DNA of 64,000 bases, from contig JALMLS010000326.1 in the NCBI GenBank assembly GCA_038496445.1, forward strand, positions 17,373 to 81,372, read 5' to 3'. A program made the translations under genes and the position numbers. Shown piece by piece: positions 39,231 through 60,009 of this stretch. This DNA is from Trichosphaerium sp. ATCC 40318 (Eukaryota > Protista > Tubulinea). The stretch's first letter is position 1. Every line of letters begins with the position of its first letter. The notes beneath the pieces were generated by a model. The model saw only the letters and a list, made by a program, of their open reading frames with translations. It was not told the DNA's origin and did not search any database.

Positions 39231-40269
39231 TTAACTTATAACGTTGAACGTAGACCTAGCACATGTACGTAGCCACCTGGTAGTATTTTAAAACACTTTG
39301 TAGGAATAAAAAATGTATACCTTTGCCTAGATAGTTTTTTATACCAGGTACTAAACTTGGTCCAATCCCACTCGAACGATGGATTGTGCACAGCGAGCAC
39401 TTGAGGCCATAGTTTAATAAAACCATATCCAGCTCTTGACGATAGCTGCTCAATTGATACACGATACCTATTAATACATTTTTGTTAGTTATTGCATCAC
39501 TCAATGGAGGCTCCAAAATATTGTACCAATCTTCATGGCTTTTTATACTGTGACTATCTTCTAGCTCCTTTAAAAAAGCAAATTGACGGGTTTTGTCCTT
39601 CCAGTAGTTCCTTGGTGCAAACCTAGATTGCCAATCAGCTTCAACGTCGACTAGTATTCTAAATGAAATGTGTACTTGAAACTCAATGCGTTCCAGTTGT
39701 GATTTGGGTACAACGTAGAAAGGCACGAAGATAGTGAGCTGTTATAGTAATTCCTTAAAGTGTGGGGTTAAAACTAGAGAGATTGAAGACAAAAACCATA
39801 CTTTAGGATGGCACGTGCGCCACAGTCTATAACGTCTTGGTTTACTACCTTGTACCAGTCGTCAAGTACCTTCACTTGGAGTCCTTCTGCTACTACGTTC
39901 AGTTTAGCTGTCTGGTGATGAGTGGCTTGCCACTGTCGATGACCTGCTCGGCTAAGACATCCATTAGCACGACTTTAAAATAGCGTTGTAGTGCCTGAAA
40001 CTGTAGCGATTCCATGGATATTGTGGATACGCTGCTTCAAGCCATTTTGATAAGGAACCGTCGTAGTGGTATCTATTTACAAGCTTAGTTTTACTATTAA
40101 AGGTAGTAAGTCACCTCAACAGCCTCAATGTAGTCGACACGTTCGCAATTGCGGGTTCTTGGACGTCATACCATTCATCCAAGCTCTTAATGCGCATTTT
40201 CTGCCCTAAAGCTTCTAATGCCGTTTTACCCACCACATAATGGCGAATGGAACACTTTAGGTGCAGCAT
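39231..40269 (-). CDS. Short paralogue of the 1780-3939 repeat protein (3 repeats, no nuclease domain visible)
   Basis: IKSLDEWYDV...AAYPQYPW, KVLDDWYKV...TLYPNHNW, IKSHEDWYRV...WPQVLAVHNPSFEWDWTKFS. Ends RWLRTCARSTFNVIS*. Confidence 0.65.
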
Positions 40270-54503: not shown

Positions 54504-57500
54504 TTATAAGTTGTTGTCAGCTTCTTGTTCTTTGTCTGATGGTGTCTTTTTAGGACCAATCTATTCAATTATATTAGCTATAATAACTTTTAATACTGTA
54601 TAAAAGCGTACCAAAGAGAGTACTACAGGAAGTAACACTAGAGCATGCAATACACCCAAAAGTGTAATGCTGAAAAATTGACGGAAGAAAACTTGAAAGA
54701 TGAACGACTTCGAAAACGCTAGTACAAGTACAGCTAAAAATGTTGATACAGCGCCATTCAATACTGCTCCGCCAACATCAACAAGCTTTAAAAACACCAA
54801 GAGTTAGCAAATAAAACAGCAAAGACACTTAAAATCAAAACGAGTAAAAAAAAGAAAAAATGAAGACTTACTGCTTTGTAAATCCTTTCATCATTGCTTC
54901 CACTCTCTTGTAGGTACGCATGGCCAATATGAGTTGAATAATCGACTGCAATACCAACCGCAAGAACCAAGTTAATAACGGACACCTAAACCCACGTGGG
55001 TCAGCACAAAACACAAAAATGTTGTAAATTGTTTTTCGAATACGTACAACGTCTAGATTGATACTCCATAGCCACATGACACCAAATATATCGATAAGAG
55101 TCATCAACACACAAACAAATACAGTCTAGGAAAAAAAATGAGCTACTTTGCAAAAATCTCGAAGTGTTTTGTTTCCTTGTACGCACCACTGACACAAAAA
55201 GGTTTCCTAGTAGTAGAACAGTGACTATGAATACCGCTGCAAGTGCTAGTAGGAGATTGACAAGAATCTCTCTTTGGATGATGGCATATTGATCAAACTC
55301 CAAAAAGCTGAAAGAGTAAGGGTATGCATGAAGTCCTGAGTTGTCCACTGTATTTCTGATACTTCTTGTAGCATCTACTTGATCAAGTGCTTTAGTAAGT
55401 GCAATCAATCTAGAGTACATCCTAGAAGCACGAATAGCTGTTTGAGAACCTGAATAAAGTCAGAAATCATGAAACTTGCAGTGCATTAATTGGTTTTCAG
55501 TGATATACCATTTTGGAACGTGATGTCATTGCTGTATCTTGCTCCTTCTGTCAAAAGCCAAGAGCTGAGTGTGGAGTGCCATGTTTCGGTATCATTTGGG
55601 GCTTGATTCGTACGATTGAGGTAGCCTTCGAAATCTATAAACCATCCAGTAACAGCTAAAAATCATTTAGTTGTTGATCTTTGTACAAGAGACTGGTGGT
55701 CGTACACGATTCGATGAACTCGTTCGAATTGACTTCTTCTATCATCCCCAGAACCCTTTCCTTCATTTCAAAATGATCAAACTCTCTGGTGACAAGAAAA
55801 ATTGGTACTCTGTCATCTTGGAAGAACGAATCTTCTACCTCGGAGTACTCTAAAAAACAGTCTTAGAACCAGACACGGTCGAAAGCCAAAAAAACGTACC
55901 TAAAGCGTAAGAATCACTTGGCAAGAAAAATACAGGATCGAACTCAGGTTGTGTTTGGATGACACCGTAAATACCAATACCCAAAAATACAATGAACACG
56001 AAAATCTGTGAAAGACCATTTAGGTAAAAATATCCGTGCGACAGACGTACAACGATAACTTTGGCGATGTTCCACTTTAATAGGTATTCAGCGTAATAAT
56101 GCCAAACTCGTCCGACGAAAGTCTCTAATTTGCCTGCTTTCTTTTCTTCTTCAGAAGGCTTATTAACACTGCAACAACAACATTCTCTCCTGCGGCCTTT
56201 CTGGCGACGAGTATCAAGTGCCAAAATGGCTGTGAATAGCGTAACTTGAAGCAAGTATACTAGAGCCACACCAATAGATGCGTATTTACAGAATGAACTG
56301 AGAGCAGGTAATACAGTAATACTACCAATAGCAAAGGCAAGCAAATCGGTCAATGATGTTACAGTAACTAAATTGTGAGTGAGCACAAAACATCAACTCC
56401 AAAACTCAAAACGTACTTGCTGCACCAGCAGAGCTAAGCGCTGAAGCAACGCGCTTTACACTTGAATCTTTTGGGTTCGTACGATCCAATGCATTTACGC
56501 TAAAGAAAGTTAGTACTGGTAGAGTTAAGGAAAGGTTAAAAAAAGAACTGGAAAAAAAGCTAAACTAGAAAACCAAAGTGTTGACGACGTACATGATGAA
56601 CATATCATCTACACCAATACCAAGTAACAAAAAAGGTAATACAGATTGTACAGGTGCGTAGAAAAAGCCCATGGCAGATGCAAGACCAAAAGATCCACCA
56701 ACACCCATGCCAATAGACAAGATACCACACAAAGGTACGACAACTAATGAGAAAAAAGTAAGAAAATTGTACCCAATCAAACTCCGAGAGATATACCTCG
56801 TGTCTTAACTGTATGTAGTTTTGTGAACATGAGAAGGACATATGATATGATCAAGAAATATCCAATACCCAAAAGTTGTAGATCTCCACTTAGAGCATTA
56901 GAAAACTCATCACCAAATGATTTCTACAAAAAAACAATTAGTAATCGATTGCTATTGAAATAAAAACACGTGCCTCAGCGTTTGTAAATAGTTCAAAATT
57001 TTCAAAGTTTACGTTCAAGGTAAGCGCAAGGAAAACATCTTCTTCCCAGGTTGTCGCTGGTAAATCTACAAAATCGCCATTCTGAAAAACCTCCCTGTTC
57101 TCAAGTGTGTACGAAAAGAAAAGTGCTCTTCCGCTAGCACGACCGTTTTCCTCAGTGTAGCCACTAATCAATGCCTTTAAGTCAGTATCATTGACTACAG
57201 CATTGGCAACACTTTGTTGGACATCTGGATCATTATTTAAAGCGATCTCATCGAAATCCCAGACGGACTAAAACATATTAAAGAAATTCATTGAAGACTT
57301 AAAAAAAAATCATAGGTCGGTTTTTGATCCCACCAAAAAAACGTACCAGTATTGATCTTAGGATACAATTATCGAAAGAGTCTTTTAGGCAAAGAGAAGT
57401 AAAATTCCACTGTTCGCCTTCCACCTATTTTATTGTGAGTTGTTTCTAACGTGTCTAACGTATTACAGAAGTAGAATTTATGGTTGTTTATACGTACTGT

Positions 57501-57896
57501 GATTGTCGTATTCACGATTTTGTCATGCAACTCCAGAAGCTCTAAAAGGGCGGCTTTATTGATCACATTTGTTCCAGTCGCTATATACTCCTCGAATCTT
57601 GGCGCTCTGTTGAAATTACTCCGGAAATCGCCTAAAGTTAAAACTGCTTCGCTATGGTGTCTTAGAAAAGCAAAATAAACACGCACATACCTGTTACCAG
57701 GTACCCAGAGTCTCTCTTCTCGATTCTCTTGTTCAAAGTTAATAAACCCAATCATCAACGCTCCAACCAATGCAAAACTCAATACGATAACCAATATAGG
57801 ATGCTCTGCATCAAATTTGCCGACTTGGTAGAAAAACCATTGAACGCCTTTCTCAGACTTCTTGGCAGCATAATTTACGAACCCACACTTCTTCAT
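54504..57896 (-). CDS. Patched/NPC1-like sterol-sensing RND membrane protein
   Basis: ERLWVP, PFLLLGIGVDDMFI, TSLTDLLAFAIG, LPALSSFC, AVGIAVDYSTHI, VLNGAVSTFLA, GVLHALVLLPVVLS. Confidence 0.92.
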
Positions 57897-58606
57897 TGCG
57901 GTGAGTGGTGCTTCTTGTGTTAGTTATGGAGAAATGACTTTTGAATACCGCCGAAAGACCGAAAACACTCTTAAACGATACCCTTTACAACGTTATATAC
58001 GTGTTAGGTTAATATAAGCCTCGTTTATTTTTCTCCGCGTACTATGTTACGACACATGTTCAACGAAAATTTTCGGACAAGTACAAAAAAATAAAGCCGG
58101 TTTAGAACAATTTGGTAAACTTGTCAGTATGACTGTAATGCCATTGTGGTGTTTAGTACGCCGGATGCAAAAAACACCGGAACCGGCGTTTTCCTTTGTA
58201 AAAGTGGCGGAATACTATTGCTCGTTTTACAACGTCACGGGCTCTAAAAATCCCTTACACACACGTCGCAGGGTAAACAAACAATAGAACTAGTGGAGCT
58301 ATTCTTGAATTCAATGCGTACATGCATGGAAAAATTCTCAAAATTACGATACAAACAAAAACGTGATTTTTCCGGTTGAATTGCATAGAATGAACAGAAA
58401 GTGGGTGCATGTAATTTTTTACAAATCTAGAATTATACATTCAATACTTTGGAAGATACTGAGACAGGTATTTATTCACAAGCGTCTGCCACAAGTTCGA
58501 ATTTTTAAGATAGAAAAAATTTTGCATTTTGAAATCGAAATATCTCCTTGATAGTGTCTTGCTATATGGAAGATCAGCACAAGATCCCCACATGAACAAT
58601 CATATC

Positions 58607-58681
58607 TTTTGAAAAGCCTCCGCCCCACCCGTTGAATAATATTCATTTCCAGGCGAGTACATCTCAGGCATTGTTCCAAAA
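58607..58681 (-). promoter_or_regulatory. Candidate form-II SECIS element with non-canonical core
   Basis: Minus strand: UUUUGGAA caau GCC uga GA UGUaCUCGCCUG gAAA UGAAU auu AUUCA a CGGGUGGGGCG GA GGC u UUUCAAAA. Shows helix I, tandem GA/GA, helix II, AAA bulge and apical minihelix, about 90 nt after the stop. Confidence 0.65.
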
Positions 58682-58769
58682 CGCATCTCTTAGGTTTTTT
58701 TGTATTTTTTTTTGAACTTGTGGCACTGACTGAGGATTTTCTCGTCCTCCTCTGTCTCTAATCTTTATA

Positions 58770-59701
58770 TTATCCCTTCACAGCCTTCTCTGCTGCTTCT
58801 AGAATATCTTCATTCTTTGGTGTATCAATAAAAAAGCCTTGTAAATGAGTATAGCTGGTTTTTGGACCAGGTCCAAAAACAAAAGTTCCACCGAGAAAAC
58901 TAAGAATATTAGAATCTCAAAAAACGTGGTACAATACGTACGGATCTGAACCATTCATGTTCCCTTTAGGAATACTTCCACCAAGCTCAGCTTTTAAAGC
59001 TTTATTCAGTCTACCTAGTTTAGGATACTTCCATACTATCGAATAAAGGTAAGCTTGGCGATCAAGATAAAAGTTATTACGAATAAAGTCTTTCGAAAAC
59101 TTTCGCATTTCTCCGCGAAACTCTGTTTAAACTGTTGTTCTTACCTTTCATTAGATCTACAAGTCCACCGGCTTTTTGAGCTTGAGCGCCCAAGGCCTTG
59201 TGTAAGGCGTAGTCGTTGGCAAGAAATGCTCGACCAGGCCAAATGTTTGTTTGAACGAACTCGGCTGCGCCAAGGTCAGTGCCAAAGACACCTAGTTTTC
59301 TGTTATTGATCGTTCGGAATTAAATTGTTTCTATGGATCATCAAAATGCCAGCATATTGTTAAACATAATGTGGAAACGCGTACCAATGAGTTCTACACC
59401 AAGTTCTTCGAGTTTGGGTTGTATTTGTGCTAAAACGGCTGCTTCGCCTCTGGTCCACTGTCACCCAGATCTACGTGAACGTTAACGCCACATACAGTGC
59501 TTGAAGTAGGATTACCTTCGAAACAACCTTAAAACTATTGGTTTTTCACCGTACAAACTCTCTAGCGTGCACTTTTCGCCATTAGAGCCATCCTTTATTG
59601 TAAGATAAGTATAGCAATAACGATCGATAAATAACCTCTTTAGAGAGCTCTGTGAGCTCAACATTAGCAATTTGGTCAAAGAAATCGCTCTTCTCCGCCA
59701 T
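58770..59701 (-). CDS. Peroxiredoxin-like 2 (PRXL2/SelU, AhpC-TSA_2 type) protein with in-frame UGA, candidate selenoprotein
   Basis: Six GT-AG exons give MAEKSDFFDQIANVEL...EKPIVLRLFRRSG[UGA]QWTRGEAAVLAQIQPKLEELGVELIGV...GSDPFLGGTFVFGPGPKTSYTHLQGFFIDTPKNEDILEAAEKAVKG*. Confidence 0.85.
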
Positions 59702-60009
59702 GTTTGGATGATTGAAGTGTTTTTTGATTTATGTGCTGAACTTAAAACGTTAATCCGAATTAATGAGTATTCTGGTAGCGTACTCAGTTGAAATGTGTCT
59801 CAGTATTTATTTTAACCATACTTGCCTTAATTGACTATGTTGCCCCAAAATGTTCAGTATTTTTCTAGTACAACGGAATAGCATCACCAATTTACATTAA
59901 TAATTAAACGCAGAGTTGTTAGAAATCAAAAAGTGTAGTCTTCTGTCATATACAATCAACTTCTGTCTATTGCATTATAACCGCACAACAGTACGTATAC
60001 GATATACAG

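Follow-up and report, generated by a model that had tools for sequence, protein, structure and literature searches.

The gene encoded on the minus strand at 59701-58770 of the window, which is the whole 64,000-nt stretch of DNA analysed here, carries an in-frame UGA, and the locus raises the question of which element in the mRNA, if any, recodes this codon. A preliminary description had put forward a hairpin further downstream (hereafter H1) as a SECIS element of unusual sequence. The host gene upstream of H1 is a six-exon gene of the PRXL2/SelU type, the structure of which was derived from the spliced contigs of four runs, belonging to four different studies, placed on 57800-59800. The exons lie at 59740-59635, 59591-59516, 59470-59383, 59289-59145, 59035-58942 and 58899 to about 58457 on the minus strand and are separated by five GT..AG introns, each joint being supported by 2-4 runs. 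The following parts of the gene are referred to below.

58770-59701, minus strand: coding part of the PRXL2/SelU-like gene, from spliced contigs with GT..AG joints
59461-59463, minus strand: in-frame UGA, codon 51, separated from H1 by 535 nt of mRNA
58770-58772, minus strand: stop codon UAA, from the sequence
58455-58769, minus strand: unspliced 3'UTR of the PRXL2-like mRNA, 315 nt, from contigs and a poly(A) transcript

The reading frame comprises 199 codons with the in-frame UGA, and the host protein matches the Pfam family AhpC-TSA_2 with 44 bits. In an alignment with prostamide/prostaglandin F synthase (9us9; PRXL2B), the UGA corresponds to the first of the two Cys in the CxxC motif; both are replaced by Ser in the mutant entry 9usa. 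None of the covering contigs has a letter difference listed at the UGA, and the JGI transcript likewise carries it. Downstream of the UGA, the coding sequence varies at 4 sites among the four runs (2 synonymous, 1 changed codon), compared with about 7% of positions in the UTR flanks in the same runs. Since the UGA occupies the site of the catalytic Cys, is kept, and is followed by a constrained coding sequence, it was accepted as a premise that a SECIS is required in this mRNA.

The public JGI gene call (L002 59-658, protein P0001) translates the UGA as Trp (SGWQW), and the selenoprotein is thus on record in a mis-decoded form; the full-length protein was analysed through this entry. Relatives of the protein were sought with exon 4 in an exhaustive search of 1.84 billion protein representatives, which returned only P0001, the gene's own product; a word search with P0001 retrieved itself alone, and exact look-ups of two ORF pieces gave no match. 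A metagenome scan with exon 4 retrieved only a bacterial dTDP-glucose dehydratase, which is a false hit. Downstream of the PRXL2-like gene, its neighbour on this strand occupies 55850-57896 of the window, with its ATG at 57896. The ORFs of this neighbour contain the sterol-sensing/Patched-like motif LLLGIGVDDMF, and run X8 contributes a contig of 2349 nt that aligns on 57800-58011.

The placement of H1 in the 3'UTR of an expressed mRNA was confirmed by the spliced contigs of the four studies together with the poly(A)-tailed transcript. The 977-nt JGI transcript L002 has an AAUAAA signal at 58474-58469 and receives its poly(A) tail after 58455. Within the mature mRNA, H1 begins 88 nt past the stop codon and finishes 152 nt ahead of the poly(A) site. 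Polyadenylation upstream of the hairpin had been named in the preliminary description as grounds for rejecting it; as the poly(A) site lies 3' of H1, this objection is removed. The anatomy of H1 can be read directly from the minus strand as follows.

58607-58681, minus strand: H1, the SECIS-like hairpin, 75 nt (58681-58607), from sequence and fold
58681-58674 and 58614-58607, minus strand: basal helix of H1 (helix I), UUUUGGAA with UUUCAAAA, 8 bp
58669-67 and 58618-16, minus strand: lower stem of H1, GCC paired with GGC
58666-64, minus strand: bulge UGA (U58666-G-A58664), unpaired
58663-62 and 58620-19, minus strand: tandem of GA opposite GA, the proposed sheared-pair bases
58662-58667, minus strand: 5' core CUGAGA, with A58664 at the site taken by U in the SECIS elements of the cited literature (PMC1874613, PMC3753652)
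58618-58621, minus strand: 3' core GGAG, with G58620-A58619 facing the 5' GA
58661-58650 and 58621-58631, minus strand: upper helix of H1 (helix II), 11 bp, 5 of them G.U
58646-58648, minus strand: unpaired AAA, 13 nt past the 5' GA and 26 nt ahead of the 3' GA
58633-58645, minus strand: apical minihelix forming a type-II top, UGAAU (58645-41) with AUUCA (58637-33), closed by an AUU triloop

All structural elements of the preliminary description were found at their coordinates on the minus strand (58681-58607), and the GA-to-AA spacing of 13 nt is as it had been given; a bulged A58658 within helix II and an unpaired U58615 are absent from that description. Energy evaluation of the described structure gave -18.6 kcal/mol versus -19.6 for the minimum free energy (MFE) structure, which adds a U58666-A58619 pair to GCC/GGC and contains a different 5-bp minihelix. 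Folded in isolation, H1 is a simple hairpin with the 8-bp helix I, and GCC/GGC is able to close its internal loop down to a 3-nt bulge. The stability z-score is -1.66 to -2.0, with 8 of 200-300 shuffles equally stable, and at a z of only -1.7 to -2.0 the folding energy by itself is no distinguishing mark. No further copies of H1 were found in the window, in which it is single-copy and not a repeat.

The published rules for SECIS elements combine sequence and structure. The primary rule of Lobanov et al. (2007) reads NUGA, 10-13 nt, AA or CC, 15-39 nt, GA (PMC2375036), and the core consensus is UGAN/KGAW (PMC3753652). Clery et al. (2007) reported U at loop position 3 in all SECIS elements; in mammals, changing the core U to G cuts Sec insertion by 88% and changing it to C abolishes SBP2 binding, the U>C change at this site being a cause of human disease (PMC1874613). 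According to the same work, SBP2 binds canonical kink-turns with a 3-nt bulge and requires a non-Watson-Crick pair above the GA tandem as well as a stable and long helix II. A 3-nt bulge closed by GCC/GGC is an arrangement that lowers SBP2 affinity, and Sec insertion was almost abolished in a rat SECIS with a closed internal loop (PMC1874613). Furthermore, Y-shaped elements are discarded by SECIS filters (PMC2375036).

H1 agrees with a large part of these rules. It lies in a 3'UTR downstream of a UGA at a Cys-homologous site, at a distance of 535 nt versus the >51-111 nt required, and its AA spacings of 13 nt (range 10-13) and 26 nt (range 15-39) are both within the published limits (PMC2375036). 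The third pair, U58661.G58621, is non-Watson-Crick and the fourth, G58660-C58622, is Pu-Py, and the 11-bp helix II is long, all as PMC1874613 requires. The tandem G58620-A58619 lies opposite G58663-A58662 with paired bases flanking both sides, and the kink-turn layout of GCC/GGC, U58666-G-A58664, GA/GA, U.G and G-C is present at the sequence level, the sheared non-Watson-Crick pairing being predicted from base positions only.

The departures of H1 are concentrated in the core. The sequence G58665-A58664-G58663-A58662 (GAGA) does not conform to NUGA, as it places A at loop position 3, and in the 3' core GGAG the G at K fits KGAW, unlike the G at W. Weighed against the determinants that agree, A58664, the closable loop and GGAG leave H1 in accordance with most structural criteria and in conflict with the most conserved sequence criterion. 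Consequently, the eukaryotic type-II architecture claimed for H1 stands as far as the spacing, the AAA, the third and fourth pairs of helix II and the tandem GA are concerned, and calling it established was an overstatement, since the core breaks both the NUGA and the KGAW rules (PMC2375036, PMC3753652). A shifted register with C-U58666-G-A58664 as the core restores the U; it was rejected because a 3x1 internal loop would then have to sit above the GA pairs, with the AAA at 15 nt.

The surroundings of H1 in the UTR are structured as well. The whole UTR folds at -85.5 kcal/mol with a z-score of -4.0 (0/100 shuffles equal), and its fold contains three nested long-range helices, namely 58758-52/58467-61, 58725-14/58498-87 (a perfect 12 bp) and a helix termed P1. 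Together with a second hairpin, termed H2, P1 defines the following features.

58674-58685, minus strand: 5' strand of P1, UGCGUUUUGGAA, from the fold, pair probability 0.995
58523-58534, minus strand: 3' strand of P1, UUUCAAAAUGCA, from the fold
58550-58606, minus strand: H2, located directly 3' of H1, with a helix of 5+7+4 bp and a 7-nt loop
58521-58685, minus strand: variant-free block of 165 nt in four non-reference haplotypes, coinciding with the P1-closed junction

P1 is a 12-bp helix of 58685-58674 with 58534-58523 and closes a 163-nt three-way junction (58685-58523), the arms of which are H1, from GCC/GGC upward, and H2. Its 5' strand is common to P1 and the basal helix of H1, and in the whole-UTR fold the basal helix loses, with a pair probability of ~0.001 versus 0.995 for P1. 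The sequence UUUCAAAA is present twice on the minus strand, at 58607-58614 and at 58527-58534, so that two alternative partners are available for the 5' strand UUUUGGAA, and the RNA might switch between the local H1 hairpin and the three-way junction. On the minus strand, UGCCACAAGUUC / GAACUUGUGGCA at 58714-58725 and 58487-58498 form a perfect inverted repeat of 12 nt that spans 215 nt of the UTR; both members of its terminal pair vary, each in a different haplotype, the X1 variant having U58725>A and L002 having A58487>U.

Sequence variation was compared in four non-reference haplotypes (the second contig in X1, X2, X12 and L002). Seven variable sites were found in 58686-58769 and four in 58487-58520, compared with 0 in 58685-58521; the X12 contig has two further differences, placed near its ends by the listing rule of the variant table. 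When 11 sites were placed uniformly in 315 nt as the null model, the variant-free run of 165 nt gave P = 0.003 (maximum-gap test), the empty fold-defined domain of 163 nt gave P = 0.0003, and H1 alone gave P = 0.047, values that are to be read with the linkage of sites within haplotypes and the thinner coverage of the distal UTR in mind. The constraint is real and acts on the whole junction, not on H1 specifically: as the invariance takes in H2 and P1, it does not point to H1 in particular. The 75-nt delimitation of the preliminary description was accordingly too narrow, the conserved unit being the 163-nt three-way junction including the second hairpin.

The apparent double change at 58520 and 58501 in L002 would convert A-U to C.C and thus gives the small helix no support. 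Runs X3, X5 and X6, two of which are under other organism labels and one of which is a marine metatranscriptome, contain 5-7% of the words sampled from 58400-59750, an amount comparable to the length of the invariant junction or of a single exon.

An invariant domain that extends beyond H1 over the entire junction, within a UTR this unusually structured (z = -4.0, none of 100 shuffles, three nested long-range helices), would also suit a 3'UTR regulatory structure that acts in stability, localisation or translation and is unrelated to Sec. The UGA would then be subject to low-level readthrough or to termination, and UGA followed by C, as it is here, is a weak termination context. The core GCC-UGA-GA / GA-GGC of H1 is that of a generic kink-turn, which could in this case be bound by a different member of the L7Ae family, for example L30 or SNU13, and L30 favours kink-turns with a protruding A or C (PMC1874613). 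However, the UGA is exactly at the catalytic Cys, is present in all transcripts and is followed by a constrained coding sequence, which together constitute a selenoprotein signature, and SelU-type selenoproteins are known in unicellular eukaryotes (PMC2375036). The AAA at SECIS spacing and the type-II top of H1 would also have to be coincidence, and a purely regulatory role of the junction is therefore considered unlikely, albeit the best placed of the competing explanations.

H2 itself offers a second competing explanation, in which it is the SBP2-binding element, either alone or in a split signal with the AAA-bearing top of H1. Its core is textbook, with A58603-U-G-A58600 (AUGA) opposite G58558-A58557, it shares the invariant block and the three-way junction with H1, and its fold has a z-score of -2.15. 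Nevertheless, no unpaired AA or CC was found 10-13 nt above this core, and helix I has just 4 bp, which puts it below the helix-I threshold applied. The MFE structure pairs U58602-G58601 with C58556-A58555, which amounts to a Watson-Crick competitor to the sheared pairs of H2. For a split SECIS, we know of no precedent. In addition, SBP2 is disfavoured both by the Watson-Crick nature of the third pair (U58599-A58559) and by a fourth pair of the Py-Pu type (PMC1874613), and with AGAC as its 3' core H2 departs from KGAW at K as well as at W (PMC3753652). A search of Rfam at E<=10 with a 76-nt slice of H2 gave no match, and no copies of H2, which is single-copy, were found elsewhere in the window. 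A recoding signal centred on H2 is somewhat less probable than a purely regulatory junction. The defects of the two hairpins are complementary, as H1 lacks the core U and H2 lacks the AA, among other features.

Pattern scans with the NUGA_AA/CC_GA rule of PMC2375036 and a lenient helix-II score identified zero canonical candidates in the 977-nt mRNA or in the interval to the ATG of the next gene, and a canonical SECIS past the poly(A) site was not found either. When the core U was relaxed to any base, H1 became the sole candidate inside the 3'UTR. The Rfam SECIS models gave no H1 match at any setting: no SECIS or kink-turn family was matched at the gathering score in the whole window, or at E<=10 in slices of 2 kb, 361 nt and 91 nt around H1, the last with a reporting threshold of ~7 bits. 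This null result counts against membership in the SECIS families and is not decisive, having been obtained without a positive control from the same genome.

The frequency of such hairpins was estimated using a relaxed descriptor that allowed any two bases before the 5' GA and demanded GA...GA, AA at a spacing of 10-13 nt, a helix II no poorer than that of H1 and a helix I scoring -6 kcal/mol or better. It returned 13 matches, including H1, in 128 kb (both strands), which corresponds to a chance rate of about 1 per 10 kb or ~3% per 315-nt UTR, a figure that is suggestive, not compelling. A plus-strand hairpin at 39665-39719 that fits the pattern ATGA_AA_GA perfectly was rejected as a SECIS, as it overlaps with an ORF of 156 aa on the minus strand and its fold is no more stable than those of shuffled sequences (z = -0.3); Rfam gave no match for it. 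The resemblance to a SECIS is probably accidental here, and the case cautions against false positives. That the SECIS-like details of H1 have likewise arisen by chance in an ordinary UTR hairpin, with the true recoding signal not yet recognisable, is the least probable explanation, for although the 13 relaxed matches with their probably spurious ATGA hairpin, a stability only about 2 sd below shuffles and the lack of covariance-model support all speak for it, the odds of a match in a given UTR are low, H1 has the added features of U.G as third and G-C as fourth pair and sits in a block without the variation that flanks it on either side, and the mRNA contains no other candidate.

Among known systems, eukaryotic type-II SECIS elements (NUGA_AA_GA; UGAN/KGAW; Rfam RF00031) are close to H1 in overall build. 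Both belong to the 3'UTR of mRNAs in which a UGA stands at a site homologous to Cys, and they share helix I, an internal loop or bulge, the tandem G.A/A.G, a non-Watson-Crick third pair, a G-C fourth pair, a helix II of ~12 nt, the unpaired AAA at 13 nt, a minihelix with a small loop, and an AA-to-GA distance of 26 nt. H1 differs from them in having GAGA instead of NUGA and GGAG instead of KGAW, in a loop that can be closed to a 3-nt bulge, in its position inside a three-way junction (a Y shape), and in matching no covariance model.

The core of H1 is also similar to the kink-turns of the L7Ae family, such as the U4 snRNA 5' stem-loop, box C/D and Kt-7, which likewise combine a C-stem ending in C-G, a 3-nt bulge 5' of GA, tandem G.A/A.G and a third-position wobble followed by G-C. 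It resembles the layout GCC-AAU-GA / GA-GGC of the U4 5' stem-loop and that of Kt-7. Helix II is short or missing in these RNAs, whereas that of H1 extends over 11 bp and is topped in the SECIS manner; H1 is also located in an mRNA 3'UTR, and its loop position 3 is A where U4 and box C/D have U.

Departures from AUGA before the quartet, which is G58665 in H1, and a pronounced apical minihelix are known from the GUGA-type SECIS of Ostreococcus and the lineage-specific SECIS of Toxoplasma (PMC2375036, PMC3753652); these variants keep the U of UGA, unlike H1. The accessory 3'UTR stem-loops of selenoprotein S (PMC3628699) resemble H2 in being a second conserved structure beside a SECIS or candidate SECIS, and differ from the arrangement here, as H1 and H2 share a predicted closing helix.

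Taken together, H1 is best explained as the SECIS of the PRXL2/SelU-type mRNA in a gene-specific, non-textbook form, to which we assign a probability of roughly 0.5. We infer that H1 forms a kink-turn, is bound by protein and takes part in recoding. In the proposed mechanism, G58663.A58619 and A58662.G58620 would be the tandem sheared pairs of the kink-turn, which would be bound by the cell's SECIS-binding protein through its L7Ae-type domain, with A58664 rather than U as the flipped-out loop base. The 11-bp helix II would set the customary spacing between the core and both the unpaired AAA and the minihelix, and the complex assembled on H1 would deliver eEFSec together with Sec-tRNA to the UGA, which lies 535 nt further 5'. 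H2 and the 12-bp P1 probably stabilise or modulate H1. The fuller version of this reading, a working SECIS with A in place of the otherwise universal U (GAGA) that acts as one arm of a conserved 163-nt junction, the other arm having AUGA/GA and no AA, is held more tentatively, at somewhat below even odds. As H1 lacks the U reported in all SECIS elements of the cited literature, its role is likely, not proven; a working SECIS without this U would surprise a specialist, and the present evidence is circumstantial. The lineage-specific SECIS variant suggested by the preliminary description is unlikely, as the variant would be specific to this gene.

The gene is a compact natural test case, with one UGA, a 315-nt UTR and two adjacent hairpins of complementary defects. 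Should H1 be inactive, the opposite puzzle would arise, namely an expressed and conserved Sec-type gene with no recognisable SECIS. Should it be active, the consequences would first concern the detection of such elements: the cited pattern-based SECIS searches require the core UGA and consensus-trained models are built around it, and a functional SECIS with an A core would be invisible to UGA-based searches. The core-U rule would then be a preference, not a necessity, and SECIS recognition in this amoeba would either tolerate a purine at the flipped-out position or be shared between two hairpins. An active H1 would also be informative about the way in which the flipped-out base is recognised by the L7Ae-type pocket of SBP2.
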